A stretch of 64,000 nt of DNA. Origin: Macrostomum lignano. Taxonomy: Eukaryota. Position 1 is the first letter of the stretch. Every line of letters begins with the position of its first letter. The position numbers and the translations under genes were made by a program. Positions 44,796 to 64,000 of this stretch are shown here, piece after piece. The notes under the pieces are model-generated. The model saw only the letters and a list, made by a program, of their open reading frames with translations, was not told where the DNA came from and ran no database searches. The DNA lies in the NCBI GenBank assembly GCA_002269645.1, contig NIVC01000647.1, positions 310,001-374,000 of the forward strand. The letters run 5' to 3'.

Positions 44796-45424
44796 TTGCA
44801 CCTAACAAATACTCTGTCTTCGTACCCAAACTAACATAGTATATAATATTTAGGGCTAGATAAGCTAAATAGATCTATATATATCGCAGTGTCGTGTGCG
44901 GTGGCCATAAACTTACAATTATCAAGATAAACTGTTAATTGGAAAAAGAAGAGCGAAGCAAGGCTGACAAAGTCAACTGTATTGTTTATTTGACTGCCAA
45001 GAGTTATTTTTACATATTACTCCTAGATGCATTCTAAAAGCTTATATAATTTAGCATTTAAGTAACACTTTTCCGCTAAATATTATACAGGACTGAAAAC
45101 ACAAAACAAAGATTTATAAGTTCACCAATCAGTTATGAGTATTTTTTCAGTGCTGAGTAACAGTAAATATTTGATGAGCTTGGCACAGCTGGTTTATATA
45201 GGCAAATAAGTAGAAAAATGATATTGATTTTACGAGGAAATGCAAATACAAACTCGTAACATGCATTCTGTCCTTAAAATTCGAACTGCTAATTTTTATG
45301 GAAACTTAACAACCATAGCTCAGCCAGGAGGACCCGGCATTGCATTTTTACACCAAACCCACCCAGTTGTACCCCTCTTCATTCTTTCTACGCCGGCTCT
45401 CCGTGTTCCAAATGCCCGTTAAAG

Positions 45425-46315
45425 CACTGAGAATCCACTGCTACTGGATGGATAGTTATTTCTGGGGAAGTTGAGAGCACTGCTGATTCGGTTTCTGCAC
45501 GACCCTCATCCGGGATTACAAGCGTGGTAGAGGTGCGTGGTGGAGTCTTCCATATGTCAACGCATGAGACCTCAGAAAGCGGTGCTTAGCGAAATATCCA
45601 ATAGCAAAGGAACTATGGTACCGAATACATGCTTATGTTTGCCAATTGAAGTAAACAGCTTTCAAGTGATTTAAAACGCAAGCTAAACTTATTAGACCTA
45701 TTAGCTGATCGCAGAACGGACCTACTTGTGGTCAAGCCACCTCTGTCGCGCATGTGCGCCTACGACGGACATGTGATAAGACAGCTGGGGGTTCTGGGTT
45801 GCCTGGTGGAGAACGGCGGCAGCAAAAGCAAATTCAGGACTGCCGAGCTGCCCGTCATTGACTGTCAACAAGAGTTCGGGTTGCTCGGCCGGAATTTGCT
45901 GACTCCCGCACCAGTGCTCTATGCTAATTATGCAGAACCAGTGGCCAGTAACAGGCATGAGAGCTTGTTGTGAATTTCTGGTGCCACAGGAGAAATCCGC
46001 CATCGTGCTAGAGTGAGACCAATCTTCCAGCCTCTTCTAAAAGCTAGGGAACTGCTTTTAGCGCTGAAGCATTTTGTTAAGAAGGAGTTGGATCTGGTGG
46101 AAAATGCCGGAATCGAAGAGAAAGTGACGTCTTCTAAATGGGGCAGTCTAATTATCGTAGCGGTGAAGTCTGACGGAGCATCTGTAAGAATCTGTGGGGA
46201 CTATTAAGCAGTTAATCGATTCGTGCAGCACCAGACTTACCTTACCCCATCAATAGCCTTCTGTAAGATAGCCAACAAAAAGCTATTCTACCGGCTTGAT
46301 CTGTCGGATGCTAGG
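45425..46315 (+). mobile_element. Gypsy remnants: integrase zinc-binding piece followed by protease C-terminus and RT N-terminus
   Basis: FLHDPHPG..RCVVESSICQRMRPQKAVL (~45490-45600); PPLSRMCAYDGHVIRQLGVL..FGLLGRNLL (45728-45900); KARELLLALKHFVKKELDLVENAGIEEKVTSSKWGSLIIVAVKSDGASVRICGDY..RLDLSDA (46013-46315). Confidence 0.85.
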
Positions 46316-46953
46316 TACATGCGAGAAGATACACCTGAAGATAAACTCCCCAGAAAACTGCTGCGGTAAAATCTCAACAAATGTGCTCAACTGAATGCAT
46401 ACCCGCCGGATGAGGACCTTTGAGCTGAGTAACTGCCACAACTGCTGCATTTTACACCCTACATGGCCTAGGTGGCATAAACCAATATCAATATAATTAA
46501 CACATGAAGACAAACATTGAACAAAAAGTTAAGCTCGCATACCATCGGTGTAATTTATGAATACAAGAAACTGTTTCAGATTACGAGCGTAAATTTTAGC
46601 CACACATTTACCAGCTGGCAGCGGCAGTTCAGATTAGGGAAACATAAACAGAGACTGAGAGACACCAAATTTTATTATGCAGACAATAAAAACGCTTAGA
46701 TTTAAAAAAGTTTAAAGAAGTATACCATGAATGCTGACTACATTTTCAATGCGTGATAAAATGAGTGAAAAAAACAAAAACTTTTAATACAAAGCAACAA
46801 GAGCTGTTAAACGATGGTAAGCAACTTAAAAATGCTTGATGCACAGTAGAGACCAAGACGACGGTCAAGTTGAATATTTGCTACAAATTGCGCTGCTCGG
46901 AGTGCTTTGTCAGACCGCTGCCTTCATTGAACTTCTTGCTGCACTCCTTGGAC

Positions 46954-47865
46954 TCAAATGGCTTTTCTTCTGTGCAGTTTTGAGTGTGTAGTGCGGTTGC
47001 TGCTGTCACTGAATCTCTTGCCACACACCTTGCACTCAAACGGCTTTTCTCCTGTGTGCACTCTAGAATGTTTAATGAGGCTGTTGCTGTAACTGAATCT
47101 CTTGCCGCACACCTTGCACTCAAACGGCTTTTCACCTGTGTGCAACCTGGAGTGCCTTGTGAAGCTGCTGACGTCACTAAATCTCTTGCCGCAAACCTTG
47201 CACTCAAATGGCTTTTCTCCGGTATGCAACCTGGAGTGTCTTGTGAAGCTGCTGACGTCACTGAATCTCTTGCCGCACACCTTGCACTCAAATGGCTTTT
47301 CTCTTGTGTGCACCTTGGAGTGTGTAGTAAGGTGGCTGCTGACGCTGAATCTCTTGCCGCACACCTCGCACTCAAACGGCCTTTCACCAGTGTGAGACCG
47401 CATATGTACGTGAAGATGAGATGAGAAGGACTTCCGACACCGCTTGCACTTGTGCGGTTTCGCCTTTCTGTGCACTGCACTCATGTGAGCTTTGAGGTTG
47501 CTTTTTCTCGAGAACTTCTTCTGGCAAGTGTCGCACTGGAACGGCCTCTGGACACCCTCAGCTCGACAGTGCCGTGTTGCAGCACTCTTTGTAGCTCGGG
47601 TATTCCCGACTGACTCGCACTCGTAACGCTTCGTCACTGCACGACTGCCGTCTGCACACGGCTGCATCACTGACTCATTGCGAGACGCGACCTGCTCGAC
47701 CGCCGCCGCTCTGACAGCTTCTGAGTTGGTCGCAGCCGCCTCCTCTGGCTCCGAGTCGCAGCCCATTTCGTGTGACCGCACATGACGCAAGTACTGCGCC
47801 ACTGCCGCTCGGGTGCGGCAGAACCGCCTGGGACAAAAGGGGCAGGCGACAGAGCCCCGGCGCAT
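46954..47865 (-). CDS. C2H2 zinc-finger protein ZF3: atypical N-terminal finger plus 7 fingers; frameshifted last degenerate finger
   Basis: ATG at 47865 (MRRGSVACPFC). A 2-bp CA deletion near 46972 relative to ZF6 ends the frame at 46954; the family C-terminus (HSEQRNL*) lies in another frame ending at 46881. Confidence 0.85.
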   Translation of the reverse strand: MRRGSVACPFCPRRFCRTRAAVAQYLRHVRSHEMGCDSEPEEAAATNSEAVRAAAVEQVASRNESVMQPCADGSRAVTKRYECESVGNTRATKSAATRHCRAEGVQRPFQCDTCQKKFSRKSNLKAHMSAVHRKAKPHKCKRCRKSFSSHLHVHMRSHTGERPFECEVCGKRFSVSSHLTTHSKVHTREKPFECKVCGKRFSDVSSFTRHSRLHTGEKPFECKVCGKRFSDVSSFTRHSRLHTGEKPFECKVCGKRFSYSNSLIKHSRVHTGEKPFECKVCGKRFSDSSNRTTHSKLHRRKAI

Positions 47866-48922
47866 CTCTGAGAAACTGTGGGGCTGCGATCCGTGCTGAG
47901 ATGCCGATGCTCGAAGCCCGTCTGTTCCTGAACTGCAATGGAGAGCGGTAGAGAATTCGTCACTTTGTAGTCGGGGTTGGAATGACACTCAAGTATGGTC
48001 ATGGATAAACTTAATGAGCCTAGCTTTAGTATCAAACGTTGGGGCTGCCAAGGTAATATTATTTTCTTTGAGGATGAGTATACTTTGGGTGTTCAGTATA
48101 GATACAAAAGTGAAAGCAAAAATGTGTTCCATAGAGGTATTTGAGATGAATTTGAATGCACAGAGCTATTTTAGAATATAAAATAAAATTGAACAACTTT
48201 GTACAGGACTTATAGGGTAGAGGTACACTTTCTTGGACAGACAATTAGAATTTACAATTTTCCAAATACATCTCAGTGCTTTTGGATGGACAAAAAGTGC
48301 CTAAAAATTAATCAAGAAAAATCTACATGTGTATGACAAAGTGCTTTGAGTACCCTCAGGGCTGCAGCAGCTGAACATACCAACTTTGTGTCTAAAACAC
48401 AGGTATGACACAGGATGACACAAAAACAGGATGGTGCAATGTGGTACTATAATGCTTTAAGTTTAGTTAATTAATTCAGATTTTTGTTATAGTAGATTAA
48501 GCAGACTTTTTTGCACTGGAGTTCTTTTATGGCTGGATTTACCAGATGGATCTCAAAGTCCATCAGATAATAATGTAAGTGCAAAAAAGCTTAGCCCTGC
48601 TAAAAATATGAGAAATTTAAATCAGTCACTCAGTTACTAATTAGAGAACTCAGTCACCCAGAGAAGCCTGGGTCAAAAATAATGTCATTCTAATTTTTTG
48701 CATTGTTTTTTGTAGAATCGGTGCTACTACGAGTACAATGGCTGATATATAATCTTTTGCTACGACTTTGCCTCTTGTCAGCTTGCATGGGAATGTACTA
48801 TATTCCATATTCTACTTATCTATTTCAGCTATTGTGCAAAATTTGTCATTGTCTAGCAATTTAAAGTTTATTATTTACATTTTTAAGCAGAATGCATTAC
48901 TACTAACAATGCATCGTTTGTA

Positions 48923-49868
48923 CGAGCGCTGTCCGGAAAGTTCTTACAATTCTAATCCCAGAGCAAAAACAGTAGCAGCTGCAAGCGCAACTTTGGTGTC
49001 ATTTTAAAGCGGCATATCTCTTCTTTCCTATGAGTTTAGTTGCGTATATTTTAGTCAGTTTTCATTCAAAAGCTGGGTGAAAAACCATTGCAATGCCATC
49101 GATAGTCTTACAGTAAATTAAAAAATATAAAAAGCTATGCTTTCTCCTCAACGAAACGAATTGTAGTCGTTCATCATCATCCTTGGAATCTGCAGCCTGT
49201 CAGCCATCTCTCGAACTGTGAAATGATTGTCATCCTCTAAAATATCGCGTGTTCGGTCAGCCAAGTCTTCGCACCCAGGATGGCATGGACGACCTGCTCT
49301 TTGTGGATCAGCGACATCGGTACGTCCTGACTCGAACTCCTCTACCCAGCGGTAGACGGTACGCCGGCTCACTGCATGTGACCCACGAATTGATGTCGAA
49401 TGAGAATGGATCTCTGCACGTCTTTCCGATGCTCCAAAGCGTGAATATTCCGCGCCTTTGGCCTTCTTTCGATTGCACACTCGTGATGGTGTCAATGATC
49501 ACAAAAATCAAAACACTTCACTAAGCACAATTTCGCAAGGTGCAAAACAGTGAGATTTGCTTACAAGTGACGGAGTGTCTAAGATAGCTCGTACTCAACA
49601 CAAGGCGTGAACGGTAAGAGAAGAATGCATTGTACATTAGAGCCGTTGTGTGTACGCTCGTAGACACTGTGCTGCAAAGAAGATCCATAAAAAACTAAGT
49701 TATGTACTTCACCTTTTACTGTAAGACTATCAGTGGCATTGCAATGGTTTTTTCACACCTAACTTTTGAATGCAATGACCAATCTAGCTCGTACAAGCAC
49801 TGAATTCATTGGAAAGAAGAATCTGTCGCTTTAAAATTTCAAAACTTAAACTTTCCGGACATCCCTCG
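48923..49868 (-). mobile_element. mariner-family deletion derivative, 946 bp, encoding only the N-terminal HTH region
   Basis: Termini TA|CGAGCGCTGTCCGGAAAGT and ACTTTCCGGACATCCCTCG|TA. Subterminal inverted match 49061-49117 vs 49714-49774. Minus-strand AEIH..GSHAVSRRTVYRWVEEFESGRTDVADPQRAGRP..DNHFTVREMADRL is a Mos1-like HTH. Confidence 0.9.
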
Positions 49869-49895: not shown

Positions 49896-50299
49896 GCTTA
49901 CCGCGCCCATTGGCTTTCCAGCTGCCTTAATCGTTTCCGGTGATCTTGTGTGCGTGCATTCAGCTTGATTGGCTGCGGCAAGTAAGCTCGAAAGAGCTCG
50001 CTTCGCTCGCTCTTTCTCGCTATCTACTATCTATTGCCAGGACCTGCACCGGAGCGGTTACGAAAATTAGATTTCTCGGTAGTTGCGCGCACTCTTTTGC
50101 ACTACTTGAGTAGTCTGATTTTCGAACGGCATGGCTGGTTCCAGCAGGTAGTTCCTCTGGATAAAAGCGCTTACCGCGCCCATTGGCTTTCCAGCTGCCT
50201 TAATCGTTTCCGGTGATCTTGTGTGCGTGCATTCAGCTTGATTGGCTGCGGCAAGTAAGCTCGAAAGAGCTCGCTTCGCTCGCTCTTTCTCGCTATCTA
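49896..50299. repeat. Two apparently identical 131-bp direct repeats around a 142-bp core, embedded in (TCTA)n; TRIM-like or microsatellite-associated element
   Basis: R1 49896-50026, R2 50169-50299; no mismatch found by eye. Confidence 0.75.
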
Positions 50300-50344
50300 T
50301 CTATCTATGCATCTATCAATCCATGTAAAATTGATCTACTACAG

Positions 50345-50660
50345 TTATATCATAATGCGGTGTGTGGTGGCCATAAACTTAAAATTATTAAGACAAACTG
50401 TTAATTGGAAAAAGAACAGCGAAGCAAGGCTGACAAAGTCAATTGTATTGTGTATTTGACTGCCAAGGGTCATTTTTACTTATTACTCGTAAATGCATTC
50501 TAAAAGCTTAAATAATTCAGCATTTAAATAACACTTTTACGCGAAACATTATACAGGATTTATAACACAAAACAAAGATTTATAAGTTCACCCATGAGTT
50601 ATGAGTATGTTTTCAGTACTGAGCATTGTAAGAGTCAATATTTGCTGAGTTTGCCACAAA
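50345..50660. repeat. ~310-bp diverged duplicate of 44885-45190 (URB1-upstream sequence)
   Basis: Shared blocks GGTGGCCATAAACTTA, AACTGTTAATTGGAAAAAGAA, GCAAGGCTGACAAAGTCAA, CACAAAACAAAGATTTATAAGTTCACC. Confidence 0.85.
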
Positions 50661-50906
50661 AACTATAAACATTTTGAAACAGCAGAAACTAAAACTAGTA
50701 AAGAAGCAAAGTTAATTGCAGAGCTGCAATTGATTAAGAAAAATGCGTGCTGCCACTAACTGGTCATTTGATTAGCTTCCGCAGCCATTACTTCAGAAAT
50801 AATCAACAAAAATCTTTAACACGAAACGACAAAACGCTTAGCACATAGTGGAGATCAAGACCGGTGGTCCACTTCTGCAATCATGGAGCGTCAGGCTGAA
50901 TTTTCG

Positions 50907-51357
50907 CTACACAATGTAATGCTCGGAGTGCCATTTCAGATGCCTGCCTCGACTGCTGCTCTTCCCGTACACCTTGATCAAATCAATTTTTTTATTTATG
51001 CACCCTGGAGTGTCTAGTGAGGTTGCTACGGCGACTGAATCTCTTAAAGCACACCTTACACTCAAACGAATTTTCTCCAGTGTGCACTCTAAAGTGCGTA
51101 TTGAGATGTCCGCATTGACTGAATCTCTTGCCGCACACCTTGCACTCAAATGGCTTTTCTCCTGAGTGCACCCTGGAGTGCCTAGTGAGGCTGCTCCTGT
51201 CACTAAATCTCTTCGCGCAACCGTTGCACTGAAACGGCTTTTCTCCTGTGTGCACTACAGAGTGCGTAGTGAGATGGCTGCCTTGAATGAATCTCTTGCC
51301 GCACACCTTGCACTCAAACGGCTTTTCTCCGGTGTGCACGGTGGAGTGCTTAGTGAA
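50907..51357 (-). pseudogene. ZF4, 5'-truncated zinc-finger paralogue closest to ZF5
   Basis: Four fingers ([22 protein letters not shown] shared with ZF5). The N-terminal domain is replaced by unrelated sequence at a T-run (~51356). Frameshift before the terminal HSEHYIV* at 50907. Confidence 0.8.
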
Positions 51358-51499
51358 AAAAAACACTGAAATACGCAAAGACGGAGATATGAGAGAATAA
51401 ATTTTGTACGATAGCTTTAAGACATTTTGATGAAGAAACATTTGTCAAAATAACTCTGAGTTTTTATATGAGAGCTAGCATTTTCTACGTTTCTGAAAT

Positions 51500-52800
51500 T
51501 TCTACGTGCTCACAGTTTGCACATATCGTTGCCAAGCTTCAGAAGCTTTCAAACGAATCCAAATGGAGTTGAAAGTAATAGTGAACACGAGACCAGTAGT
51601 GTCGAGTGTCCGACCACTACTGTTTTCGCTTGATCCACCTGAAATTACCTGTGTTTGATAAAACTATTGTGGTAGCTTCGGAGCTCTTCGATGATGCTGT
51701 GAAGCGTTTTCGGAGTGGTGACTTTTATCCCTAAGTTGCAATAAGTAAGGACTGCTATTCCGTATGATTTCTGACAGACGTTGTCTGAGCTTGGACGCCA
51801 GAACACCAGAGTGCAGTGTAGCAACTGAAGCAGGACATCATATCGAGACACTTACTGACTCCGTATGATCCAACTGAAGACTGAAAACAAATAAAAACAA
51901 TGCAAACTGGAGATCAAATGGACTAAGTTTTACACGGAGACGAGCAGATCAAATGACGTTTTCAGTCGATTGCGATTACGTGAAGATGTACTGGAGTCGT
52001 ATCGACGATTGCAGAGTAGACTGCGCTGCACTGAGAATCTACTGGTACTGGATCATCGGATAGTCATCATTGGGGAAGCTGCGAGCACTGGTGATGCGGA
52101 AATGGCTCGACCCTCATCTAGTAATACAGAAGTATTACTTCTGTATACAGAATACAGATAGAGAAGTGCGTAGCGGAGAGTTCCACATGTCAACGCATAG
52201 GACCTTCTCAGAAAGCATGCTTAGAGCAATGGCCAATAGCAAAGGAACCATGGTGCCATAAGACATATTTGTGATGATTCTGTGACATTGACACACTGGC
52301 TGCCGTCAGAGTACAGTAAACGTTCTGAAATCTGGGCATGCCGGAAGTAATTATCATTGACAATGGACCTCATTCTTTGCTAAAGAGACAGCATGTTGGC
52401 TGAAGTACTACCTCTGAAATCACAGCCATACCGCACTGCTTCTTAAGCAACAGTCCGATCCCTCTAGTAGAGAGAGGAAGCCTTACAAGAAGCTGTGACT
52501 GAACAGCTACGGCAAGTATAAGATCACCAAGTTCGAGATTTGATGATGCATCGTGACCAAATCAGAGACAGCTCAGCAAGCGCAAGACAACAATTTCAGA
52601 GACAACAATGCAAATAAGCCATTAAAAACGAAAGTTCGGAGCGCAAATACACAGTGCGGACAAGGTACCACCGGACAGGTATTGATTGTTTCGAACGGCT
52701 TTCAACACCGCCATGAACAGGTAGTGACTGAGCAGACAGTAAAACTACAGAACATACACCTGAAGATGAACTTCCCAGAAAACTTCTGCAGCTGAAAAAC
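51500..52800 (+). mobile_element. Gypsy remnant (RT, RNase H and integrase fragments) preceding ZF5
   Basis: WTPEHQSAV*QLKQDIISRHLLTPYDPTE (~51790-51880); YRRLQSRLRCTENLLVLDHRIV (~52000-52070); WPIAKEPW (~52230); integrase C-terminal RSERKY-like segment (~52635). Confidence 0.85.
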
Positions 52801-53260
52801 TCAACCAACTTTGCTCAACTGACTGAATACTCGCAAAATAAGGACTTTTGAGCTAAGGAACTGCCGCAACTGCTGCATTTTACACCTTACATGACCTAGG
52901 TAACAGAAATAAATATCAAAACAATCAATACTCCAAGACAAACACAAAAACAAACAATAAAGCTCATATGCAATCAGTGTAATTAATTAATACAACGAAA
53001 AAGTTTCAGAATAAATTTTAGCCACGAACTTACCAACTTACCCGCTTTCAGCTGCATTTCAGACAGGGTTTCACAAAAGTAAAGACATCGAACAATAAGT
53101 AAGCATACTATGAGTGCAGACTACTTTTACAAAACGTAGTTAGAAAAGTGGAAAATAACAACTAAAAAAGAACGGCTGCAAATCGAGGTTGAAAAAAACA
53201 AAATCAATAAACTTAGTGCCTTGTCAGTCTGCTGCCTCGATTGAATCTCCTGCCGCACAC

Positions 53261-54016: not shown

Positions 54017-54509
54017 CTTTGAGAAACTGTGGGGCTGCGATCCGTGTTGAGATGCCGATGCTCGAACCCCGTCTCTGCCTGAGCAGCAATGCGGAGGGGC
54101 AGAGATTTCGTCACTTGTAATACGGGTTTGAAAGACATGTAAATGAACTGCACAATACTATCTGATATCTAAAACATAAATACGATAGCTAGGTCATATT
54201 GACAAATAAGTGAACAACTTTATTCATTTTATGAAATTTATGCAAATAACATGCATTCTTTCCTTGAAATTCGAACGGCCAATTTTTTTTGAGGCGTAAC
54301 CGAGTGGGTGTATTGTGCCTAAACGTCTTTGGTGCACCGACGATAATCCATGGAACTCAGCACCGTAGACCCGGCATTGCACTCTTACCCAGACCTGCTG
54401 TGTCTACATAAAAACCCACCCAGTTGTACCCCTTCTCACTTTTTCTGCCTCGTTCTTCTACAATACATTCCAAAACTAAGTACAAAAAAGCGCTGCTGCT
54501 TAAAAAAAT

Positions 54510-56480
54510 AACTTAAGGCTGGCCTGGACTGAAGGAAAGTTCGAAGCATGGATCCAGCGTTTTGAAGCTGTTTACAGAAGATTTTGTGTGAAGGACGAGA
54601 AATTCGACTGAAGCAGTGCTCAAGACTGAATATCCGCATGACAGCTTAAAACACGAAGCGTTTTAAGGAAGGAAAGGAAATTCGCTTCAAATATAGCCAA
54701 GAAATCACTGGGTTGACCTTAAACTGAACGGCAAAGACGTTGCAACGATGGTGGATTCTGGAGCATCCGAGACCTGCATTCTCCAGAGTCGGGCTCAACA
54801 GCTGTAACTACTCAGGGGTGATAAAAATTGTCGATTAAATCTTATCAGGAAAAAGATCTACCAGTATGTCGCACTGCGATTGATCGATGGCAGACCGAGG
54901 ATGAAAGCTGAGTGCTCACATTTAGTAAATGTCGTTGCCAAGCTTCAATGGCCTTCAAGTGAATCCAATTGAAGTTGGAAGTAATAGAGAACACGAGATC
55001 AGTAGTGTCGAGGGACTGACCATTACCGTTTTCGCTTAATTATAGACGTTAAGGAGAGATTAAAAGAATTCGAAAGGCGAGAGAGTATTGAAAGAGAACT
55101 ATGCAACGACCTGTGTTTGCTAGCACTATTGTGGTAGTTCCGAGAAGTTTCTGGAGTTCTTTGATGATGCTTCGGGGTGTACTCAGAGTGGTAGTGTTCA
55201 TCCCTCAACTGGCCATAAGACTGCTATCCAGTATCATTTGCCGAAGGACGTTGTCTGGGCTTGGACAATAGAAGACCAGAGTGCAGAAGCTACTGAGCGG
55301 GGCGTCATATCGAGATACTGACTCCGTATGATCAAACTGAAGAGCTGATCCTGACAACTGATGCAAAGAATGTGGGTCTCAAAGAAACCCACACCTGCGG
55401 AGTTGCGGTATAGCCAACTTGAGCGAGAGGCTCATGGATTGCTGTAGTAGTTACGATAAAAATTAAAGATTTGAATCAATTTACGCTTGTAAATTAGATT
55501 TAAATCGATTTCCGATCTACTGAAGTTTCACAATCATAACAGTTTACAAGCAGTTTCGATTCAAGACTGGAGCTCGAAGATCAGCTAAAGCGTCACACGG
55601 AGACGAGAAGATTAAAAAGTCGTTTTCGGTCGATTGCGATCATGTGAAGAGGTATTACAGTCGTATCGATATCGAGTAGACTGCGCTGCACTGAGAATCT
55701 ACTGCTACTGGATCATCGGATAGTCATTGCTGGGGAAGCCGTGAGCACTGGCAATGTGGTTATCTGCACGACCCTCATTCGGGATTACAAGCAATCAATG
55801 CAAATGGCGCGTCATTATAATTTCCTTGCCAAATATCGAAGCCGAGATAGAGAAGTGCGTAGCGGAGAGTTCCGAATTTCAACGCACGAGACCTCAGAAA
55901 GCGATGCTTAAAGTCATGGCCAATAGCAAAGAAACCATAGTGCCGAATGCATGCTGACTTATTTGTGATGAATAAATCTGACACTAACGCACTGGCTGCC
56001 GACAGAAAATCGCAAAGAACGTTTTGAAATTTGTGCATCCTGGAAGTACTTGTTAGTGACAATGAACCTCATTCGTTACTAAAGAGACAGCAAGTACTAC
56101 CTCTTAAATCTGAGATACCACATTGCTTCTTAGGTTACAGTCCGATCCCTCCAAAAAAGAGTGGAGAGAAGGAGCCCTACAAGAAGCTGTGACTGAACTA
56201 CGGCGAGTACAAGATCTCCAAGGTCGAGATCTGATGATGCATTGTGACCATATCAGAGACAGCTCAGCGAGCGCAAGAAAACTATTTCGGAGACAACAAT
56301 GAAAACATGCCATTAAGAGCAAATGTGTTCTGAGCGCAAATACCCAGTACGGACAAGGGGACCACCAGACAGGTATTGACTGTTTTGTCCGGCTTCGTAT
56401 ACCGCCATGAGCAGGTAGCGACTGAGCAGCCAGTAAGAGTGCAGACAGTAGACATGAAGATGAACTTCCCAGAAAACTAC
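54510..56480 (+). mobile_element. Best-preserved Gypsy remnant, order gag-PR-RT-RH-INT
   Basis: gag WTEGKFEAWIQRFEAVYRRF (~54525); protease NHWVDLKLNGKDVATMVDSGAS (DSG at 54754); RNase H LTPYDQTEELILTTDA and AELRYSQLEREA (~55320-55430); integrase LHDPHSGI..PNIEAEIEKCVAESS..RPQKAML.SWPIAK..MHAD (~55765-55960). Heavily deleted. Confidence 0.88.
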
Positions 56481-56837
56481 GGCAGCTGAAAAACTCTGAA
56501 AAACAAATTGCTCAGTTGACAGAATGCTGAGCATCTGCCACAACAACTCCTGCGTTTTACACCTTGCATGGCCTAAATCAGTATCAAAAAATCAACACAC
56601 TAATACACATTAAAAAGAAATAATAAATGATCAGCTCACAATGCAATCAGTGTAATTTATAAATACAAGGGAAAAAAGTTGCACTTACAAGTTTGCAGCT
56701 GCATTCCAGATTAGGGAAATATAAACACAGAATCTGAAAGTCGTAAAGCTACCAAAATCCTTAATGCACGCACAAATAACGATTCATATCGTTACACGAA
56801 ACACAGGAGTTTGCAAAAGACATGAAACAATAAGTAA

Positions 56838-57481
56838 TCTAAGCGTGCAGTTTGGTACGGCTGGGGCCCGCTGACATTGGGCCTCATGGTCTCCGGCGCC
56901 ACCCGGCAGATCCAAATCCTCAGTGGACGGGGTGGACTGGCGGCGCATGTTGGATCCGCGCAGCCGGCCTCTGCGATTCCGTTCACGACGCCTCTCAATC
57001 CGACGCCGAACGCTCCGCTTGCCCCGTCTCACTTTGGTGCTGACTTTTGCAGCCGCAGCCGGGGGGCGCGGCTCACCGAGCCGACCGAGGAGAGCGCAGT
57101 CTGATGCAGGTGCTGCTGCTGCGTCACCAGGAGGCGTCAGCATTATACTTGCACATCAGTGTAAATATAAGCTGAGCCCTCCCAGCGTGACCCTGCGACA
57201 GCGCCGCCTGAAGCTGGCGGGCCACGTCATTCGCGCCGAGTCCTACTGCCCGGAGCCGCTGCAGGAGGTCTTGCTGTACACGCAGCAGGGCCCGTTCCGG
57301 CGGGGGCAGGCGCGGACCCGGAGGTTCGTCGACTGTCTGACAGAAGACGCCAGGGCGCCTGATCAGATCAATGGCGCTACCTTCATCAGAGACTGCGCAG
57401 CTAAGCGTGCTTTTTGACAATGTCCCCCCCTTTCCTGACCACTTGTGGCCGGTGGCCATTGTATTTATTGTATTGTATTGT
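56838..57481 (+). mobile_element. 5'-truncated RTE-clade non-LTR retrotransposon insertion with an inverted 5' segment and a 9-bp TSD
   Basis: 3' part (+) LRQRRLKLAGHVIRAE..GPFRRGQARTRRFVDCLTED..* with an (ATTGT)n tail. TSD AATAAGTAA at 56829-56837 and 57482-57490. The paralogous empty site has one copy at ~53094-53102. Confidence 0.85.
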
Positions 57482-57712
57482 AATAAGTAAGTTTACTACG
57501 AGTGCTGACTAATTTTGAAGTGAAAAAAAGTGGAAAAGTATGCCAGCAACTAGAGGTTAGAAGCAACAAGAGCAACAAATTAAAATTCAACAAAGATCAT
57601 TAATATGAAACGAAAAGGTCTGCTAAACAAAAGTAAGCAACTTGATGAAACGCTTGGCGCACAAAAAGGACCAAGACGGCTGTTGAATAAAAGCAGCGAA
57701 GTTGAATATTCG

Positions 57713-58621
57713 CTATACATTGTGCTGCTCGAAGTGCTTTGTCAGGACGCTGCCTTGGTTGAAACTCTTGATACACTCCTTGGATTCAACTGGCTTTTCT
57801 TCTGTGTGTAGTTTTGAGTGTTTAGAGAGGTTGCTGCGGTCACTGAACCTCTTGCCGCACACTTTGCAAACAAACGGCTTTTCTCTTGTGTGCATCCTTG
57901 AATGCTTAATGAGGCTGCTGCTGTCACTGAATCTCTTGCCGCACACCTTGCACTCAAACGGCTTTTCTCCTGTGTGCAGCCTTAAGTGCTTAGTGAGGCT
58001 GCTGCTGTCACTGAATCTCTTGCCGCACACTTTGCACTCAAATGGCTTTTCTCCTGTGTGCACTCTAGAATGTTTAGTGAGGCTGTAGCTGACGCTGAAT
58101 CTCTTTCCGCACATCTTACACTCAAACGGCCTCTCTCCAGTGTGAGACCGGATGTGCACGTGTAGATGAGTTACATCTAAGAAGGACTTCCCACACCATT
58201 TGCACTTGTGCGGTTTTTCGTTCCTGTGCACTCCACTAATGTGAGCTTTGAGGTGGCTCTTGCTAAAGAACTTCCTCTGGCAAGTGTCGCACTGGAACGG
58301 CCTCTGGACACCCTGAGCTCGACAGTGCCGTGTTGCAGCACTCTTTGTAGCTTGGGTCTTCCCGACTGACTCGCACTCCTGACGCTTCGTCACTGCACGA
58401 CTGCCGTCTGCACACGGCTGCATCGCTGACTCATTGCGAGACGCGACCTGCTCGACCGCCGCTGCTCTGACAGCTTCTGAGTTGGTCGCAGCCGCCTCCT
58501 CTGGCTCCGAGTCGCAGCCCATTCCGTGTGACCGCACATGACGCAAGTACTGCGCCACTGCCGCTCGGGTGCGGCAGAACCGCCTGGGACAAAAGGGGCA
58601 GGCGACACAGCCCCGGCGCAT
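57713..58621 (-). CDS. C2H2 zinc-finger protein ZF6, 302 aa, apparently intact
   Basis: ATG 58621. Atypical finger, 6 canonical fingers and a degenerate terminal finger ending HFEQHNV*. Confidence 0.9.
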   Translation of the reverse strand: MRRGCVACPFCPRRFCRTRAAVAQYLRHVRSHGMGCDSEPEEAAATNSEAVRAAAVEQVASRNESAMQPCADGSRAVTKRQECESVGKTQATKSAATRHCRAQGVQRPFQCDTCQRKFFSKSHLKAHISGVHRNEKPHKCKWCGKSFLDVTHLHVHIRSHTGERPFECKMCGKRFSVSYSLTKHSRVHTGEKPFECKVCGKRFSDSSSLTKHLRLHTGEKPFECKVCGKRFSDSSSLIKHSRMHTREKPFVCKVCGKRFSDRSNLSKHSKLHTEEKPVESKECIKSFNQGSVLTKHFEQHNV

Positions 58622-58899
58622 CTCTGAGAAACTGTGGGGCTGCGATCCGTGCTGAGATGCCGATTCTCGAAGCCCGTCTCTTGCCTGAGCAGCAATGTGG
58701 AGGGGTAAATAATTCGTTATTCTATAATCCGACTTTGAATGGTATTGCAATCGCTGTGTAAAATCTGATTTAATCCACTTTTAGACAGAAAAAAAGTAGA
58801 CAAAGATTTGTGAGAATAAATTTATTTGTTGCACGCTTTAACAACTTTCTATAATGAATTCTGTGTTTCTGGCCAGAAACAATTTGACAATAAAAAGTT

Positions 58900-59620
58900 T
58901 GCCTGAGCTGAGACAGAAGTGCGTAGCGGAGAGTCTCATTTGTCAAGGCATGAGACCTTCTCAGATAGCGGTACTTAAAGCAATGGCCAATAGCAAAAGA
59001 GCAATGCATGCTGATCTTGGCCAATTAGAATCCAAATACCTTAGGGTGATTTAAAACGAAAACACAGGACTTATCTGTGATGAATGAATTTGTGACATCG
59101 ACGCAGCGGCTGTGGCCAAAGTTTCGGGAAGTACCGGTATGTTTTAAAATTTTGGCACCCCGGAAAGGGCCGGAAAGACTCTTTACTGACAATGGACGTC
59201 ATTCGTTGCTAGAGACAGTAGGTTGGTCGATACAGCACTGATCTTAAGATACAGCCCGATACCTCCAATAAAGAGTGGAGAGAATGAGCCATACACAAGA
59301 AACTGTGATTAAACAGCCACGGCGAGTCCAAGATCACCAAGGACAAGATCTGGTGATTCATCGTGACCACCTCAGAGACAGCGCAGTCAGCGAGGGACAA
59401 CCATCTCGGAAACAACGAGCAGCCAAGTCATTAGGAGCAAAAGTTCTGAGCGCAAATACCCAGTGTGGACAAGACCACCAGACAGGTATTGATTGCTTTG
59501 TCCGGCTTTGAATACCGCTATGAACAGGTACTGACAGAGCAGCCAGTAAGAGTGCAGAAGGTACACCTGAAGATGAACTCCCCAGAAAACTGCTACAGCT
59601 GAAACGCTTAACAAACTTGA
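58900..59620 (+). mobile_element. Gypsy integrase remnant preceding ZF7
   Basis: KCVAESLICQGMRP..WPIAK..MHAD; FGTPERAG..FTDNG; VQDHQGQDLVIHRDHLRD; SSERKYPVW. Confidence 0.8.
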
Positions 59621-60157
59621 GCAACTGACTGAATGCCTGCTGGTTGAGACCCTGAGAGCTTAGCAACTGCCACAACAACAGCAGAATTTTACAACTTACA
59701 TGGCCTAGGTGACATTCAATATCAAAATAACCAACGCATGAAGACAAGCATTAAAACGAACAATAAATGAAGTTTGCATGCCAAGGACGTAATTAAAAAT
59801 TACGAGTACAAGGAAAAAAGCTCAAGAAGAAATTTTAGCCACGCATTCAACAGCCTAGATCTGCAATTCAAACTGGGGAAACATCAAAAGACTCCGAAAG
59901 TCACTAAATTCCTTCATGCTGACAATATTAACGCTTGATGTTAAAAGGTGAAAAGACATGGAACAATAATTAAGTATACTACGCGTGCTGACGACTTGGA
60001 CAATACGTAATACGATGGATGGAAAACAACAACTAGAATAGTATGGCAGAAACAAGTGTTTGGAAGCAACAATACCTGTTGCCTCCAACGATTGTGAGCA
60101 ACTTAAAACGCTTGACGCACAGTATAGGCCAAGACTGGCAGTAAATTTGAATATTCG

Positions 60158-61150
60158 CTATACATTGTGCTGCTCGGAGTGCCTTGTCAAAGTGCTGCCT
60201 CGATTGAATCTTTGGCCACACACACTGCGCTTAGATGGCTTTTCACCGGTGTGCACCCTGGAGTGCCTAGTGAGGTGGCTGTCTCGATTAAACCTCTTGC
60301 CGCACACCTTGCACTCAAACGGTTTTTCTCCTGTGTGCAGACTTGAGTGCCTACTGAGGTGGCTGCTTCGATTAAATCTCCTGCCGCACACCTTGCACTC
60401 AAACGGCTTTTCTCCTGTGTGCACCCTAGAGTGTGCAGTGAGGCCGCTGCTAAATCTGAACCTCTTGCCGCACACCTTGCACTCAAACGGCATTTCTCCT
60501 GTGTGCAGCCTAGAGTGCCTACTGAGATGGCTGCCTCGATTAACTCTCTTGCCGCACACCTTGCACTCAAACGGCTTTTCTCCTGTGTGCAGACTTGAGT
60601 GCCTAGTGAGGTGGCTGCTTCGATTAAATCTCTTGCCGCACACCTTGCACTCAAACGGTCTCTCACCAGTGTGAGAACGGATGTGCACATAAAGATGAGA
60701 TAACCTTGAGAAAAAATTCCCACACCGCTTGCACTTGTGCGGTTTCGCCTTCATGTGCACTGCACTAATGTGAGCCTTGAGGTGGCTTTTTTTGGAGAAC
60801 TTCTTCTGGCAAGTGTCGCACTGGATCGGCCTATGGACACCCTGAGCTCGATGGTGCCGTGTTGCAGCACTCTTTGTAGCTTGGGTCTTCCCGACTGACT
60901 CGCACTCCTGACGCTTCGTCACTGCACGACTGCCGTCTGCACACGGCTGCATCGCTGACTCATTGCGAGACGCGACCTGCTCGACCGATGCCGCTCTGAC
61001 AGCTTCTGAGTTGGTCGCAGCCGCCTCCTCTGGCTCCGAGTCGAAGCCCATTCCGTGTGACCGCACATGACGCAAGTACTGCGCCACTGCCGCTCGGGTG
61101 CGGCAGAACCGCCTGGGACAAAAGGGGCAGGCGACAGAGCGACGGGGCAT
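60158..61150 (-). CDS. C2H2 zinc-finger protein ZF7, 330 aa, apparently intact
   Basis: ATG 61150 (MPRRSVACPFC). Atypical finger, 7 canonical fingers and a degenerate terminal finger ending HSEQHNV*. Confidence 0.9.
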   Translation of the reverse strand: MPRRSVACPFCPRRFCRTRAAVAQYLRHVRSHGMGFDSEPEEAAATNSEAVRAASVEQVASRNESAMQPCADGSRAVTKRQECESVGKTQATKSAATRHHRAQGVHRPIQCDTCQKKFSKKSHLKAHISAVHMKAKPHKCKRCGNFFSRLSHLYVHIRSHTGERPFECKVCGKRFNRSSHLTRHSSLHTGEKPFECKVCGKRVNRGSHLSRHSRLHTGEMPFECKVCGKRFRFSSGLTAHSRVHTGEKPFECKVCGRRFNRSSHLSRHSSLHTGEKPFECKVCGKRFNRDSHLTRHSRVHTGEKPSKRSVCGQRFNRGSTLTRHSEQHNV

Positions 61151-62329
61151 CTCTGAGAAACTGTGGGGCTGCGATCCGTGCTGAGATGCCGATGCTCGAA
61201 TTGCCCGTCTCTGCCTGAGCTGCAATACGGAGTGGTAAATAATTCGTTACTTTGTAATCTACTCCACTTTTAGACCGAAAATGATGAAAGACGTAGACGG
61301 ATGTGTGAGAATAAATTTAAATTTAGTGCCGCGTTCTTACAACTTTTTTCCATAATGAACACTGTACTTCTGGCCATAAAGTAGCCAGAAACAATTTTTG
61401 ACAATGAAAAGTTTTAAACTAGCTAGCGATGTTGTTGGGCATCTGAAGTGTTTTTTCTTGGAAGATGTGAAATATTGAGACGGTGAAAGCGAGTCCCAAG
61501 ACCGCTGACCGACGTCTGGATACTGAGCAAAGGGCATAAATGCCTCTGAGAAATATTTTCCACGAAAATGATATTGCAATTTTAAAGTTAATTTCCCTGC
61601 AGAAAAATAAGAGAAAGAAGGAACTGCTTGAAACACAAGTAGAGTAAACTTATACTCTAAAATGTGAGCTAATAATCAAAGAACTGTAATGAGGGTATTT
61701 TATTAAATGTGTAATGGCAGAGGGAAAGAGATCAGAGGGAGGGAGTGTAGTGCGCTTGTGCGCGGATTACAAAGTGGTCTCATGGACCATATATTTGAGT
61801 TAATATATAGGCACTGCGACGTGCGGCTACAACGTTGTGCAATGGTTAGGGGGGGGGGGCAGAGCTAGCGCACGTTGGTCGAGAGAACTCAGGCTAGAGT
61901 CGCATACAAGCCTACAGGCATAGAGGGGCGTACACTACAGGGAGGGAGGGATCAGAGGGAATGAGATTGTCATATTTAATGGCAAGCATATTAATGTGCT
62001 ACACCGGTATAAGCAGACAGAACATTCTTTCATGTGCTTCCATCTTCATTAGTGCAGTGAAGGCAGACAGACAGGAGAGGTGCAGCGTGCTCAAAGACGG
62101 CAATTCTCAATCTAAACAATCCAACTCAAACGGTCAGAGATTTGGCTTACAACCAACCAGTTAGCTGTGCTCAGTCTCAAGAAACTGAAGTCTTCAACTG
62201 AATGATAAAGATGTGAGCTGTAAGCAGCACTAGCAAGTTGGCAGCCTTGAAAATCTGCATTGAAGCGGCAGCACAGCTGAAGCACCGCATGGCTGGCAAA
62301 ATGCCTTGCGGAGAAGCTCAGTGCGGGAA

Positions 62330-63190
62330 ACACCTCAATGCGAGCCTCAGCAGAAAACTGCTGTAGCTGAAACACTCAACCAACTTGATCAGCTGATTGA
62401 ATATCCGCTGGCTGAGGCCCTGAGAGCTGAGCAACTGTGAATGACAAAAGCTGCTTTGGACACCTTAATTGGTCTACTACGTAAAGTCAATAGCAAAACA
62501 ATCAACACATAAAGACAAACATTTAAACAAAAAATACTTAAAGTTTGCATTAGTGACCCGCTCTACGGCGAGCTACATAGCCAGCGGAGGGGGGGGGGCT
62601 AGGCTAAGTACAGAGCACTCTAAACAGGCGCACAAAGGCAGGGGGTGGCTGATCACTAAAGCTGATTCGCACAAGTTGCAAGCACCTATGCAAACCAATG
62701 CAATAACAACAGTGTAATTTATAAATACAGGGGAAAAGGTTGTGATTACATTTTAGCCATGCCAGTTGTGTAACAAACAAATTCCATCAGACAGAAAATA
62801 CTCGTATTAACGCCTCATTACACAAAATATAAACAAGATAAATATTATTAAAAAACAAAACAAAAACAACACCCGATATAATAATCAGCATTAAAAAGTT
62901 AAAATTAGTCCAGCGGTGAAGTACACTCATAGAAGCCGTGACTGACTGGTGATTGAATGTTGTCGCTATCTGGTATTTGAGAGCTGTTACTACTGTCATT
63001 AAGTGCTGTCACTAACTGGTCTTTGGAGTAGCTGCCATCTGTACTACTATAAAAGAATTAAACAAGGATCATGAATACGAAACGACAAGAGATTTTAAAC
63101 GATAGTGAGCAACTTAAAAACACTTGGCCTACAGTAAGCAACAAGACCGGTGATCCACTTCTGCAGCAACGGAACTCGAAGTTAAATATA
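62330..63190. other. ZF-less relic of the repeated unit: Gypsy-distal segment plus ZF 3' flank, coding region deleted
   Basis: AGAAAACTGCTGTAGCTGAAACACTCAACC..GAGGCCCTGAGAGCTGAGCAACTG (~62352-62440) and CAAGACCGGTGATCCACTTCTGCA (~63142-63165) match the flanks of the other units. Confidence 0.7.
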
Positions 63191-63209
63191 TTCTGTTCAG
63201 AGAGCCTTT

Positions 63210-64000
63210 TCTGCTGGCTGCCATGGATTTAGCTGTTTGAAGCCGTCTGCAGAAGATTTGGCGTGCAGGACGAGAAAGCCGACGGATTGACAAACAAGAA
63301 CCATATTTTAGGCCTCATGGGGAAAGCCACGTGTGACAAAAAATTACGGATCTTGGTCGATCAGAAGCCAGATAAAAATGAGAACTGAAGGATGAAACCA
63401 AAAAGATTGTAATCTTGCAGAAAAACCTGTTGTGGCGGAGCGCTACAAATTTAACGTATTGAATCAAGACGAGTACGAGCCAGCGGTAGATTTTGAGAAC
63501 CGACTGAGAGTTCAAGCCTACAGCTTTTAATTTGGATACTATCTGAAAGCTCTGAGAGTTCGGTTCGTAGCAGGACGGTGCAATGCGTCGGTTTGGTAAA
63601 GGTGGAAGCAGCTGGAAGCAGTAAATTCAACGAAGGGCAGAATGCGACATCAAAGCAGTGCTCAAGATTGAAGCCGCATGCAAACTTAAAGACCATTTGT
63701 CTGGGATGGAAGGGCAAAATTCTTTTCAAACAAAAGACCAAGAAATCACTGGGTTGACCTTAAACTGAATGGTAAAGACGTTGCAACGATGGTGGATTCT
63801 GGAGCATCGGTGACCTGCATTGCCCAAAGTCTGGCTTAATATACTATGACCACTCTGGAGAGATACATTGTCGATTGAAGCTTATAAGGGACAAGAGCTA
63901 CCAGTATGTTTTACTGCGAATGATCAATTGCATACCGAGGATAAAAGTTAAGTGTTCAGAGTTAGCAAACGCCGTTGCTAAGCTTCAGTGGCTTTTAAGC
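63210..64000 (+). mobile_element. Gypsy gag-protease remnant starting a further unit that runs off the window
   Basis: FEAVCRRFGVQDEK, VVAERYKFNVLNQDEYEPAVDFENRLRVQA (gag); HWVDLKLNGKDVATMVDSGASVTCI (DSG at 63795). Confidence 0.85.

Follow-up and report, generated by a model that had tools for sequence, protein, structure and literature searches.

Two arrays of C2H2 zinc-finger (ZF) genes in the analyzed window, 64,000 nucleotides of Macrostomum lignano DNA, most probably belong to a young, lineage-specific family that grew by tandem duplication, with a dead retrotransposon fragment hitchhiking along. There is no sign of a special anti-transposon device, and the process is one of ordinary tandem gene duplication. 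In the model that we favor, a single LTR-retrotransposon would have inserted shortly after the 3' end of an ancestral ZF gene, in antisense orientation to it, and its LTRs and the greater part of the reverse transcriptase (RT) would have disappeared before duplications started. Segmental duplication at the DNA level, by unequal crossing-over, would then have copied gene and spacer together with the dead fragment, which would since have been eroded by neutral decay, shortened in some units and lost from others. The ZF genes themselves would follow a birth-and-death regime, some copies staying open and transcript-annotated and others becoming truncated, frameshifted or deleted, and surviving copies would have diversified in DNA-contact residues and finger number.

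Layout of the arrays and anatomy of the units

In the right array (45.2-64 kb), single-exon C2H2 ZF genes on one strand alternate with degraded pol remnants of LTR-retrotransposon origin on the other, and the left array (1-3.3 kb) has the same layout in inverted orientation. A previous reading of the letters alone (the sequence-only reading) had described such a repeated unit of ZF gene and Gypsy remnant, and analyses of ORFs, Pfam domains, motifs and self-BLASTN confirmed it. The self-comparison of the window that this reading had proposed was performed with BLASTN and showed units that are collinear across coding and non-coding parts, with E values down to 0 and far beyond chance; units A, C, D, E and F are collinear in the order remnant, tail, 3' flank, ZF gene and 5' block. 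The following features were distinguished:

1-469 (+; ORF 2-466): ZF1, left array, C-terminal fingers (4 canonical), gene cut by the window edge
900-2720 (-): left remnant with gag-like piece, protease, collapsed RT, RNase H junction, integrase N-terminus and tail
2728-3286 (+; ORF 2728-3283): ZF2, last unit of the left array, 5'-truncated, fingers degenerating
45187-45640 (+): unit A remnant, the unit's 5' part and an integrase N-terminal fragment
45842-46323 (+): extra RT N-terminal fragment, only in unit A, in frame with the shared tail
46324-46953 (unstranded): unit A tail and ZF 3' flank, the conserved 600-900-bp segment of the sequence-only reading
46954-47988 (-): ZF3, open ORF, ATG 47865, N-terminal block and six C2H2-pattern fingers
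50830-51445 (-; ORF 50992-51441): ZF4, 5'-truncated, fingers without N-terminal block
51446-52748 (+): remnant of unit C, which retains the RT/RNase H junction and pieces of integrase; motifs at 51858, 52042 and 52158
52749-53260 (unstranded): unit C tail and ZF 3' flank, from self-BLASTN collinearity
53261-54157 (-; ORF 53261-54016): ZF5, open, ATG 54016, linker deletion of 28 codons, stops within a finger
54187-56448 (+): unit D remnant, the fullest copy, with 5' part, aspartyl protease, collapsed RT, RNase H start and integrase fragments
56449-56837 (unstranded): unit D tail, from self-BLASTN collinearity
56838-57481 (+): later LINE-like insertion of 645 bp, outside the ancestral unit
57482-57712 (unstranded): ZF6 3' flank, from self-BLASTN collinearity
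57713-58750 (-): ZF6, intact, ATG 58621, 302 aa, N-terminal block, atypical first fingers and canonical fingers
58791-59555 (+): unit E remnant, integrase fragments only
59556-60157 (unstranded): unit E tail and ZF 3' flank, from BLASTN matches to other units
60158-61225 (-): ZF7, intact, ATG 61150, distinct contact-residue pattern (RSHR fingers)
61260-63200 (+): unit F, ZF-less relic that keeps tail (62351-62760) and ZF 3' flank (63003-63165), ZF gene deleted
63222-64000 (+): beginning of one more unit, cut by the window edge, with 5' part and protease (DSG 63789)

Both the ZF-less relic and the beginning of another unit had been noted, and they were located at about 61260-63200 and from about 63222; the relic is unit F, and the remnant at 54.2-56.7 kb is the partner of ZF6. 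When compared by BLASTN, ZF1 shares 75-80% identity with ZF3, ZF5, ZF6 and ZF7, and the left remnant matches units C and D. Unit A matches unit D in three segments (45187-45310 with 54187-54300; 45424-45523 with 55688-55792, 84%; 45528-45633 with 55848-55955, 80%), and its portion 46324-47972 matches 59556-61259 (79%) in unit E while 46324-46616 matches 52749-53038 in unit C. Also, 51932-53008 (unit C) matches 55595-56683 (unit D) at 74.6%, unit E matches unit D (55956-56630 with 59068-59770, 72%) as well as unit C (52428-53026 with 59230-59843, 75%), and 54611-54959 matches 63653-63999 at 79%.

All three recurring peptide motifs of the sequence-only reading are present opposite the ZF strand in several units, the DSG protease motif at 54748, 63789 and 2275(-), LTPYDPTEE at 51855, 55318 and 1652(-), and YR.LQSRL..TENLL.LDHRIV at 52000, 55690 and 1490(-). 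The motif series of unit D runs through 54748, 55107, 55139, 55247, 55321, 55702 and 55847, and that of the left remnant through 2275 (DSG), 1881 (RPVFA), 1849 (SEKF), 1744 (DVVW), 1663 (YDP), 1468 (LDHRIV) and 1164 (ELPKKL).

Of the seven ZF copies, whose ORFs the sequence-only reading had described as mostly open, four are so, and the full ending is kept only in ZF6 and ZF7, the C-termini of ZF3 ('HRRKAI') and ZF5 being altered. In ZF2, homology begins at 'SSAVTKRHEC', the N-terminal block is missing and no remnant is found downstream; this copy is probably a pseudogene. About half of the ZF copies are truncated, frameshifted, broken or deleted.

Nature of the remnant and its shared lesion

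Raw reading frames gave Pfam matches to an aspartyl protease (gag-asp_proteas, unit D, E 2e-5) and to RT_RNaseH_2 (unit C, E 0.016), and a hand-stitched peptide scored 35.1 bits for RT_RNaseH_2 (cut-off 29.8) and 28.9 bits for gag-asp_proteas (cut-off 28.2). RVT_1, rve and Integrase_H2C2 had no Pfam match in any frame or stitched peptide and, therefore, a catalytic RT and integrase core was not recovered. Weak collinear BLASTP matches connect the remnant to residues 112-149, 678-719 (E 0.006), 1055-1093 (E 0.07) and 1137-1191 of an intact Ty3/gypsy pol. All copies lack the RT core, and the only RT fragment recognized by BLASTP was the N-terminal one of unit A, which aligned with residues 442-513 of the intact pol from the paralogous locus L002 (E 1e-5; BLASTP, two-sequence database) and had no Pfam match. 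The order of domains is consistent with PR-RT-RNase H-INT of Ty3/gypsy elements, and also with Bel/Pao. Ty3/Mdg4 families are dominant in M. lignano (PMC12801592). The label 'Gypsy' is thus weakly supported, by the RT_RNaseH_2 and protease matches and not by an integrase detectable with Pfam; judging from such weak or hand-stitched matches, the source was probably a Ty3/gypsy-type LTR-retrotransposon, possibly with two fragments joined into a composite. Searches of the protein collection and of the loci examined brought up no intact relative of the remnant.

The same collapsed RT region is present in three copies, namely in the left array, in unit D and in the paralogous contig L001, which argues that a single, already inactive insertion gave rise to all the remnants. 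In the left copy and unit D, the spacing from RPVFA to SEKF is 32 nt, with about 105 nt to DVVW and 74-81 nt to YDP, and the distance from RPVFA to YDP amounts to 220 nt in L001 versus 214 nt in unit D. From protease to RNase H start, the remnant spans about 190 aa, when compared to about 590 aa in the intact L002 Ty3/gypsy pol. The copies therefore do not simply bear different deletions, as the sequence-only reading had it, this large RT deletion being common to them.

Paralogous loci and the origin of the association

ZF family members are found in the left and right arrays of the window, in L001, in L002 and at the locus behind paralogue P0004. L001 (14000-20585) is collinear with window positions 59942-53540 at 87-94% identity and, therefore, the array is older than that split. 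The 645-bp insertion that separates the unit D remnant from ZF6 is missing in this copy (L001 16513 corresponds to window 56837 and L001 16521 to window 57482); by eye it looks like the tail of a non-LTR retrotransposon, and the ORF inside it (56923-57417) had no Pfam match.

At L002, no remnant follows the ZF paralogues at 10004, 11130 and 14413, one unit has kept just the gag-side piece (17305-18200) and another just some 130 bp of the tail; this tail piece (46438-46571 in the window) lies downstream of L002 ZFs where pol remnants are absent. The L002 ZF ORFs of 449 aa and 311 aa are uninterrupted and carry single-exon gene annotations; in GenBank, Mlig_3_7 was annotated from transcripts (PMC5730564). 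Thus, the possibility raised against the linkage, that paralogues elsewhere lack the Gypsy flank, applies to L002, where little or nothing of the remnant is left, and does not apply to L001. Open L002 ZFs with the remnant mostly lost indicate that ZF gene and remnant came together once, in an ancestor, and that tandem segmental duplication multiplied this arrangement, as opposed to capture or co-selection.

Alternatively, a Ty3/gypsy element might have captured the ZF gene as an antisense ORF between integrase and 3' LTR and spread it by retrotransposition or as a trans-mobilised non-autonomous element, the arrays then being LTR-internal-LTR concatemers. We consider this origin, which the sequence-only reading had put forward, extremely unlikely. 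LTR retrotransposons with extra antisense ORFs or captured host genes are known mainly from plant Ty3/gypsy lineages. The Macrostomum ZF ORF resembles those ORFs in position and orientation relative to integrase; it has a single exon and, in each full unit, directly follows the integrase remnant on its 3' side in antisense. With copies so degraded, an origin within an element keeps a small probability, and the short segment that recurs upstream of some ZFs (45187-45310 and its unit D match; L002 20040-20400, matching window 54115-54438) could in principle be an LTR relic. However, no direct-repeat pair resembling LTRs brackets any remnant or unit (BLASTN word size 8, E 1e-3), and all copies seen in the window and at the three other loci compared lie in head-to-tail arrays, so that neither a gene between LTRs nor dispersed copies with target-site duplications were found. 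Moreover, the element was defective before the duplications, the ancestor that all copies share already having a collapsed RT, and no intact carrier was found; the intact Ty3/gypsy element in L002 is devoid of a ZF ORF and unrelated to the remnant at the DNA level. The presence of the family at several loci, which would also suit capture, is accounted for by the neopolyploidy of M. lignano and its highly redundant assembly alone, with 180-312 Mb duplicated (PMC5730564). Tandem duplication with birth-and-death, in turn, is matched by collinear non-coding sequence, common pre-duplication lesions and a mixture of intact and pseudogenised copies.

Selection on the zinc-finger genes and their possible function

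Pfam searches with ZF3, ZF5, ZF6 and ZF7 returned zf-C2H2 and zf-H2C2_2 with E values of 1e-24 to 1e-48, and consecutive C-x2-C-x12-H-x3-H fingers with TGEKP-type linkers are present, as in C2H2 tandem ZF proteins. The seven open paralogues that were compared carry 4-10 pattern-matched fingers each (5-11 C2H2 motifs when counted over the whole ORF); the zinc ligands and the scaffold residues do not vary among them, variation is clustered at helix positions -1, 1, 3 and 6, and the sets of contact residues differ between paralogues. Such canonical arrays suggest that the proteins would be sequence-specific DNA-binding regulators. The N-terminal domain had no Pfam match, an exhaustive HMMER search of 1.84 billion representative proteins yielded no relatives of the N-terminus beyond its own family, and its AlphaFold model (pLDDT 43) is uninformative.

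Remnants differ by Jukes-Cantor (JC) distances of 0.20-0.25 and tail plus flank by 0.29-0.46, values that bracket the dS of fingers 1-3 (0.27-0.29), and the remnant therefore looks neutral. For fingers 1-3, dN/dS is 0.38-0.43, for the N-terminal block 0.56-0.75, for the linker above 1 and for comparisons with L002 about 1 overall, these pairwise values being non-independent and possibly distorted by gene conversion, as the uniform 5' block suggests. This 360-bp block is unusually alike in all paralogues (90-97% identity), with very low dS and also low dN, which suggests homogenisation and not protein-level selection. The finger scaffold of surviving copies appears to be under moderate purifying selection. 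Collinear units, a common RT collapse and nearly neutral remnants next to constrained fingers thus support the other origin that had been offered, in which a ZF-Gypsy pair was tandemly amplified and only the ZF stayed under constraint.

That the array is decaying and has no current function, ORFs being open only through the youth of duplicates or gene conversion, is very unlikely in our judgment. The high proportion of damaged copies, the homogenised 5' block and the higher ratios of N-terminal block, linker and L002 comparisons would fit such decay. However, the finger ratio of about 0.4 was reached at a dS of about 0.28, a divergence sufficient to break unconstrained ORFs of 300 codons, invariant ligand and scaffold residues are set against variable contact positions, and paralogues are included in the transcript-based annotation.

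Equally, the selective history of the remnant bears on a proposed dual anti-transposon locus, in which long, possibly polycistronic minus-strand RNAs would encode DNA-binding repressors and carry antisense retroelement sequence into the piRNA pathway, the remnant being kept as useful; we judge this very unlikely. piRNAs are 24-35 nt long, and 28-32 nt in M. lignano. Unidirectional piRNA clusters have been described in this species, with Macpiwi1 piRNAs mostly antisense (Zhou et al., 2015, PMC4604429), polycistronic precursors are common among its transcripts (PMC5730564), the paralogue name Mlig009848g4 suggests several genes per transcriptional unit, and across animals ZNF expansions follow TE load (PMC10547256). 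All right-array remnants are antisense to the ZF genes, but this uniform orientation results automatically from tandem duplication. Also, the remnant is about neutral and deleted from most L002 units while transcript-annotated ZFs stay open, no intact or close target relative was found in the protein collection or the loci examined, and piRNA clusters make up only 0.63% of the genome (PMC4604429). The combined repressor and antisense/piRNA locus of the sequence-only reading therefore has no support beyond geometry. Likewise, the array resembles flamenco-type piRNA clusters in sequence geometry only, with one-way TE fragments antisense to local genic transcription; such clusters hold a graveyard of many active families, whereas here one ancient fragment is repeated with protein-coding genes interleaved.

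The hallmark of KRAB-ZNF (KZFP) proteins is an N-terminal KRAB domain that recruits TRIM28. Only fingers were matched by Pfam in the Macrostomum proteins, with no KRAB or other effector domain, so they do not qualify as members. As in the lineage-specific birth-and-death clusters of mammalian KRAB-ZNFs, cyprinid FiNZ genes and Drosophila ZAD-ZNFs (Wells et al., 2023, PMC10547256), head-to-tail paralogues have a family-specific N-terminal region followed by a variable canonical finger array, with contact-position variation, variable finger number, many pseudogenes and TE-rich surroundings. In contrast to those families, the Macrostomum genes lack KRAB, SCAN, BTB, ZAD or FiNZ domains (Pfam), and they have a single-exon CDS and an N-terminus without outside relatives; with regard to TE repression, the likeness would be one of evolutionary signature only (cluster, variable contact residues). 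Nothing essential distinguishes the arrays from segmental duplications with a TE passenger, in which every duplicate bears the same defective fragment with the same lesions, place and orientation and decays neutrally; unusual is the number of units that keep the fragment, at two to three paralogous loci.

Layout of the zinc-finger array and its paralogous loci

ORF calling, Pfam searches and finger motif counts showed that the ZF ORFs of the window are genuine C2H2 genes, and self-BLASTN together with a MAFFT alignment of the units revealed a single collinear layout. Along the + strand, the order is 5' part, protease, collapsed reverse transcriptase (RT), RNase H start, integrase fragments, tail (the shared segment that follows the integrase fragments), ZF 3' flank and reversed ZF gene. 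The repeated unit proposed in the sequence-only reading is thereby confirmed, and the peptide motifs listed in that reading recur, as claimed, on the strand opposite to the ZF genes.

Zinc-finger ORFs and units of the window, and paralogous loci
2-466, +, ZF1, left-hand array, inverted relative to the right-hand array
2728-3283, +, ZF2, left-hand array, N-terminus missing
46954-47988, -, ZF3, C2H2 ORF
50992-51441, -, ZF4, C2H2 ORF, 5'-truncated
53261-54016, -, ZF5, C2H2 ORF with a linker deletion, end falls within a finger
54.2-56.7 kb, remnant of ZF6 (unit D), set apart from ZF6 by a 645-bp insertion (56838-57481)
57713-58750, -, ZF6, C2H2 ORF
60158-61225, -, ZF7, C2H2 ORF
61260 to ~63200, unit F, ZF lost, tail and 3' flank retained
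start at ~63222, further unit
NIVC01000975.1 140739-161323, L001, M. lignano contig with ZF family genes
NIVC01001847.1 35828-56358, L002, M. lignano contig with ZF family genes

The 645-bp insertion of unit D is missing in the collinear L001 copy. It contains an ORF (56923-57417) with a terminal '...RRLKLAGHVIR...'-type sequence, which by eye resembles the C-terminus of a LINE-type (non-LTR) reverse transcriptase; a Pfam scan of this ORF gave no match. A direct repeat of 331 bp (86% identity; 44867-45187 and 50328-50658, 5.4 kb apart) lies around unit A and ZF3. It was rejected as an LTR pair around ZF3 because its positions are not equivalent within the unit and it has no other occurrence in the window; candidate interpretations are a solo LTR, a SINE or the scar of a rearrangement. 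Another direct repeat, of 140 bp with 99% identity (49896-50034 and 50169-50308), is far younger than the rest of the array.

The right-hand array is collinear with L001 at 87-94% DNA identity, and L001 is a paralogous or homeologous copy, distinct from the window locus. The left and right ZF arrays of the window (1-4500 and 45187-64000) are mutually inverted and 40 kb apart, whereas the two L001 sub-arrays (0-3200 and 9800-20585) share one orientation at a distance of 6.6 kb. The paralogous loci therefore differ by an inversion or rearrangement. Between the L001 sub-arrays lies a retroelement (5689-9500, + strand) with a SAP-domain ORF, an RVT_1 ORF (E 7e-9) and further long ORFs without a Pfam match; this retroelement is possibly DIRS-like or of another non-gypsy type.

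Origin and identity of the retrotransposon remnant

Four observations favour an origin of the repeat by DNA-level tandem duplication, in which a gene was copied together with a dead passenger. First, the collapse of the RT is shared. Both the inverted left copy and unit D have 32 nt between RPVFA and SEKF, then ~105 nt to DVVW and 74-81 nt to YDP; the RPVFA-to-YDP distance is 220 nt in L001 versus 214 in unit D. From protease to RNase H start there are ~190 aa in the remnant versus ~590 aa in an intact L002 pol. Further deletions are nested, the loss of 55348-55595 being common to unit C and the left copy, and the protease is absent from units A and E. Second, self-BLASTN of the window detected no LTR-like direct repeats around any remnant or unit. 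Third, units differ in the remnant by JC distances of 0.20-0.25 (0.29-0.46 in tail and flank), which match the dS of fingers 1-3 (0.27-0.29), as would be expected for a remnant that drifts neutrally. Fourth, no trace of the remnant lies downstream of three L002 ZF paralogues, one further L002 unit keeps only a gag-side piece, and in another only a tail piece of ~130 bp is left, with the upstream region of the next gene directly after it. The L002 ZF ORFs of 449 aa and 311 aa are open and annotated as single-exon genes, and the M. lignano annotation was built from transcripts (PMC5730564). The remnant, missing or reduced in L002 while the ZF ORFs stay open, is dispensable.

The leftover pieces show that L002 goes back to this ancestral arrangement as well, and the whole association of ZF gene and remnant is therefore one ancient event copied many times. 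The sequence-only reading had offered either capture and spread of a ZF gene by the retrotransposon or tandem amplification; given the shared RT collapse, the lack of LTRs, the neutral remnant and its loss in L002, only the latter is supported, and capture is very unlikely. The locus is a tandem C2H2-ZNF cluster, specific to its lineage and accompanied by a TE relic as passenger, and provides a clean example of an apparent gene-TE association produced by tandem duplication. As every unit goes back to a single event, treating the units as independent evidence would be pseudo-replication, a caution for scans that score repeated co-occurrence.

In raw frames of the remnant, Pfam matches were limited to fragments of a protease (E 2e-5) and of RT_RNaseH_2 (E 0.016). 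A peptide stitched by hand across frameshifts and copies reached 35.1 bits for RT_RNaseH_2 (cut-off 29.8) and 28.9 bits for gag-asp_proteas (cut-off 28.2). An apparently intact Ty3/gypsy element is located 2 kb upstream of the L002 ZF cluster (2302-7859, - strand), with a gag ORF of 348 aa containing a CCHC knuckle and a pol ORF of 1508 aa containing PR, RVT_1, RNase H, H2C2 and rve. Remnant peptides gave weak but collinear matches to this pol at residues 112-149, 678-719, 1055-1093 and 1137-1191. Judged from these matches, the remnant appears to be an LTR-retrotransposon pol in the order PR-RT-RH-INT. Given that Ty3/gypsy elements dominate in M. lignano (PMC12801592), Ty3/gypsy is its likely, though unproven, superfamily. 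When gag and pol of the intact L002 element were compared with the window by TBLASTN, nothing scored below E 0.1, and this element belongs to a different family, unrelated at the DNA level to the window remnants. Searching the stitched 300-aa pol peptide against a 5.8-billion-protein collection yielded no match at E 1e-3 and no intact relative.

Unit A alone carries an additional RT N-terminal fragment (45842-46323; BLASTP E 1e-5 to residues 442-513 of the intact L002 pol), which reads into the shared tail and suggests an ancestral spacer made up of two fragments. This continuity is the sole hint of RT in the tail; RT palm motifs are not claimed there, as Pfam found none and BLASTP of the tails of units C and E was non-significant.

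The uniform 5' block and evolution of the ZF genes

A block of ~360 bp, reaching from ~120 bp upstream of the ATG to about codon 80, is 90-97% identical in all ZF paralogues of the three loci. Elsewhere in the units, identity is 65-85%, and it falls abruptly upstream of the block.

Copies of the 360-bp block
window: 58382-58741, 47626-47984, 60911-61259, 53819-54132
L001: 15264-15623, 9944-10300, 12226-12489, 20031-20306
L002: 11143-11491, 14426-14774

In the block, dS is 0.06-0.07 versus 0.28 in the adjacent fingers, synonymous sites are conserved as much as non-synonymous ones, and similarity is not predicted by orthology. This pattern points to gene conversion or nucleotide-level constraint, and not to protein-level selection, as the probable cause of the uniformity.

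Among 5.8 billion sequences, the N-terminal 118 aa of ZF6 matched only Macrostomum lignano proteins, with 92% identity to BOX15_Mlig019357g1 and 81% to BOX15_Mlig009848g4. The N-terminal region has no Pfam domain and, among 1.84 billion representatives, no relatives beyond the ZF family; the four strongest matches were paralogues or chimeric models fusing neighbouring paralogues. An AlphaFold2 model of the N-terminal 150 aa was uninformative (pLDDT 43). What is documented is a lineage-specific C2H2-ZNF family with a previously undescribed N-terminal region in a regenerating-flatworm model.

Among the public proteins P0003, P0004 and P0005 are chimeric gene models in which several adjacent ZF paralogues are run together; P0004 contains the N-terminal block four times, and P0005 joins four L001 genes. 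Exact-product look-up returned no record for ZF6 or P0004. The UniProt 'secreted protein' A0A1I8JPV5 is the N-terminal block translated in an alternative frame. All three forward frames and some reverse frames of this apparently GC-rich block are open, but dual coding was dismissed as not significant given the few stop-prone trinucleotides in such a stretch and copies at least 90% identical.

Pairwise dN/dS over the N-terminus and fingers 1-3 was 0.5-0.8 within the window and L001 and ~1 against L002.

Substitution rates by region (dN; dS; dN/dS)
First 67 codons: 0.04-0.05; 0.06-0.07; 0.56-0.75
Linker: above dS; very low; >1, with few synonymous differences
Fingers 1-3: 0.10-0.12; 0.27-0.29; ~0.4

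In linker codons 68-105 of ZF3, ZF6 and ZF7 (e.g. 58307-58420), between the block and the first canonical finger, pooled omega was 1.7-5, a value based on very few synonymous differences. A loss of 28 linker codons is seen in ZF5 and in the corresponding L001 gene. Finger variation among paralogues is found at helix positions -1, 1, 3 and 6, and finger number and contact sets differ by paralogue (RSHR in ZF7, DSSK in ZF6, FSNS in one L002 gene). About half of the ZF copies are truncated, frameshifted or deleted. Such contact and finger-number variation with broken copies is the birth-and-death signature of tandem ZNF families in general, whose expansion follows TE load across animals (PMC10547256).

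Functional proposal and genomic setting

That the array supplies both repressors and antisense or piRNA substrate against TEs, as had been proposed, is very unlikely. The antisense geometry of remnant and ZF gene is real, and M. lignano has unidirectional piRNA clusters (PMC4604429) and many polycistronic transcripts (PMC5730564). However, this geometry is an automatic outcome of tandem duplication, and the remnant, besides being dispensable, evolves neutrally. Neither the 5.8-billion-protein collection nor the loci examined yielded an intact or close relative as its target, and piRNA clusters make up only 0.63% of the M. lignano genome (PMC4604429). We likewise regard it as very improbable that the array is a flatworm counterpart of a KZFP cluster and also a unidirectional piRNA source. 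In such an array, long, possibly polycistronic - strand transcripts could code for rapidly evolving DNA-binding repressors whose N-terminal effector region is new, and could bring antisense retroelement sequence to the piRNA pathway; the 360-bp block could correspond to a regulatory or processing element common to the genes. If the ZF proteins target transposons, a link that is hypothetical here, the ZNF-TE arms race would extend to Platyhelminthes; for M. lignano, transgenesis, RNAi and piRNA data are already available.

The tandem ZNF cluster with its relic lies in a neopolyploid genome (PMC5730564) with 21% LTR retrotransposons, 15% simple and tandem repeats and a highly redundant assembly (PMC5730564). 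The window, very rich in tandem repeats, fits this picture: about twenty separate satellite arrays lie within 3953-41809 (3.9-41.8 kb). Their periods range from 4 to 44 bp and their lengths reach 2 kb; one of them comprises 135 copies of a 15-bp unit at 30433-32430. The 24-bp satellite array at 3953-4504 recurs beside the ZF cluster in L001 (2187-3101). An Npa1/NopRA1 (URB1-like, ribosome-biogenesis) gene with large GC-rich ORF blocks is located on the - strand at 40213-44626 (40.2-44.6 kb), and a 44-bp tandem array (41238-41809) lies between two of these blocks. At E 1e-10 the NopRA1 block had no match in the protein collection, an odd outcome for a conserved gene. An Rfam scan of the window detected no RNA family. 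Two Tc1/mariner-type fragments are present: at 49001-49837, inverted repeats (49001-49117 and 49715-49837, 79%) flank an HTH-domain ORF (49148-49495, - strand), and 37989-38516 (+ strand) encodes the C-terminal part of a DDE_3 transposase.
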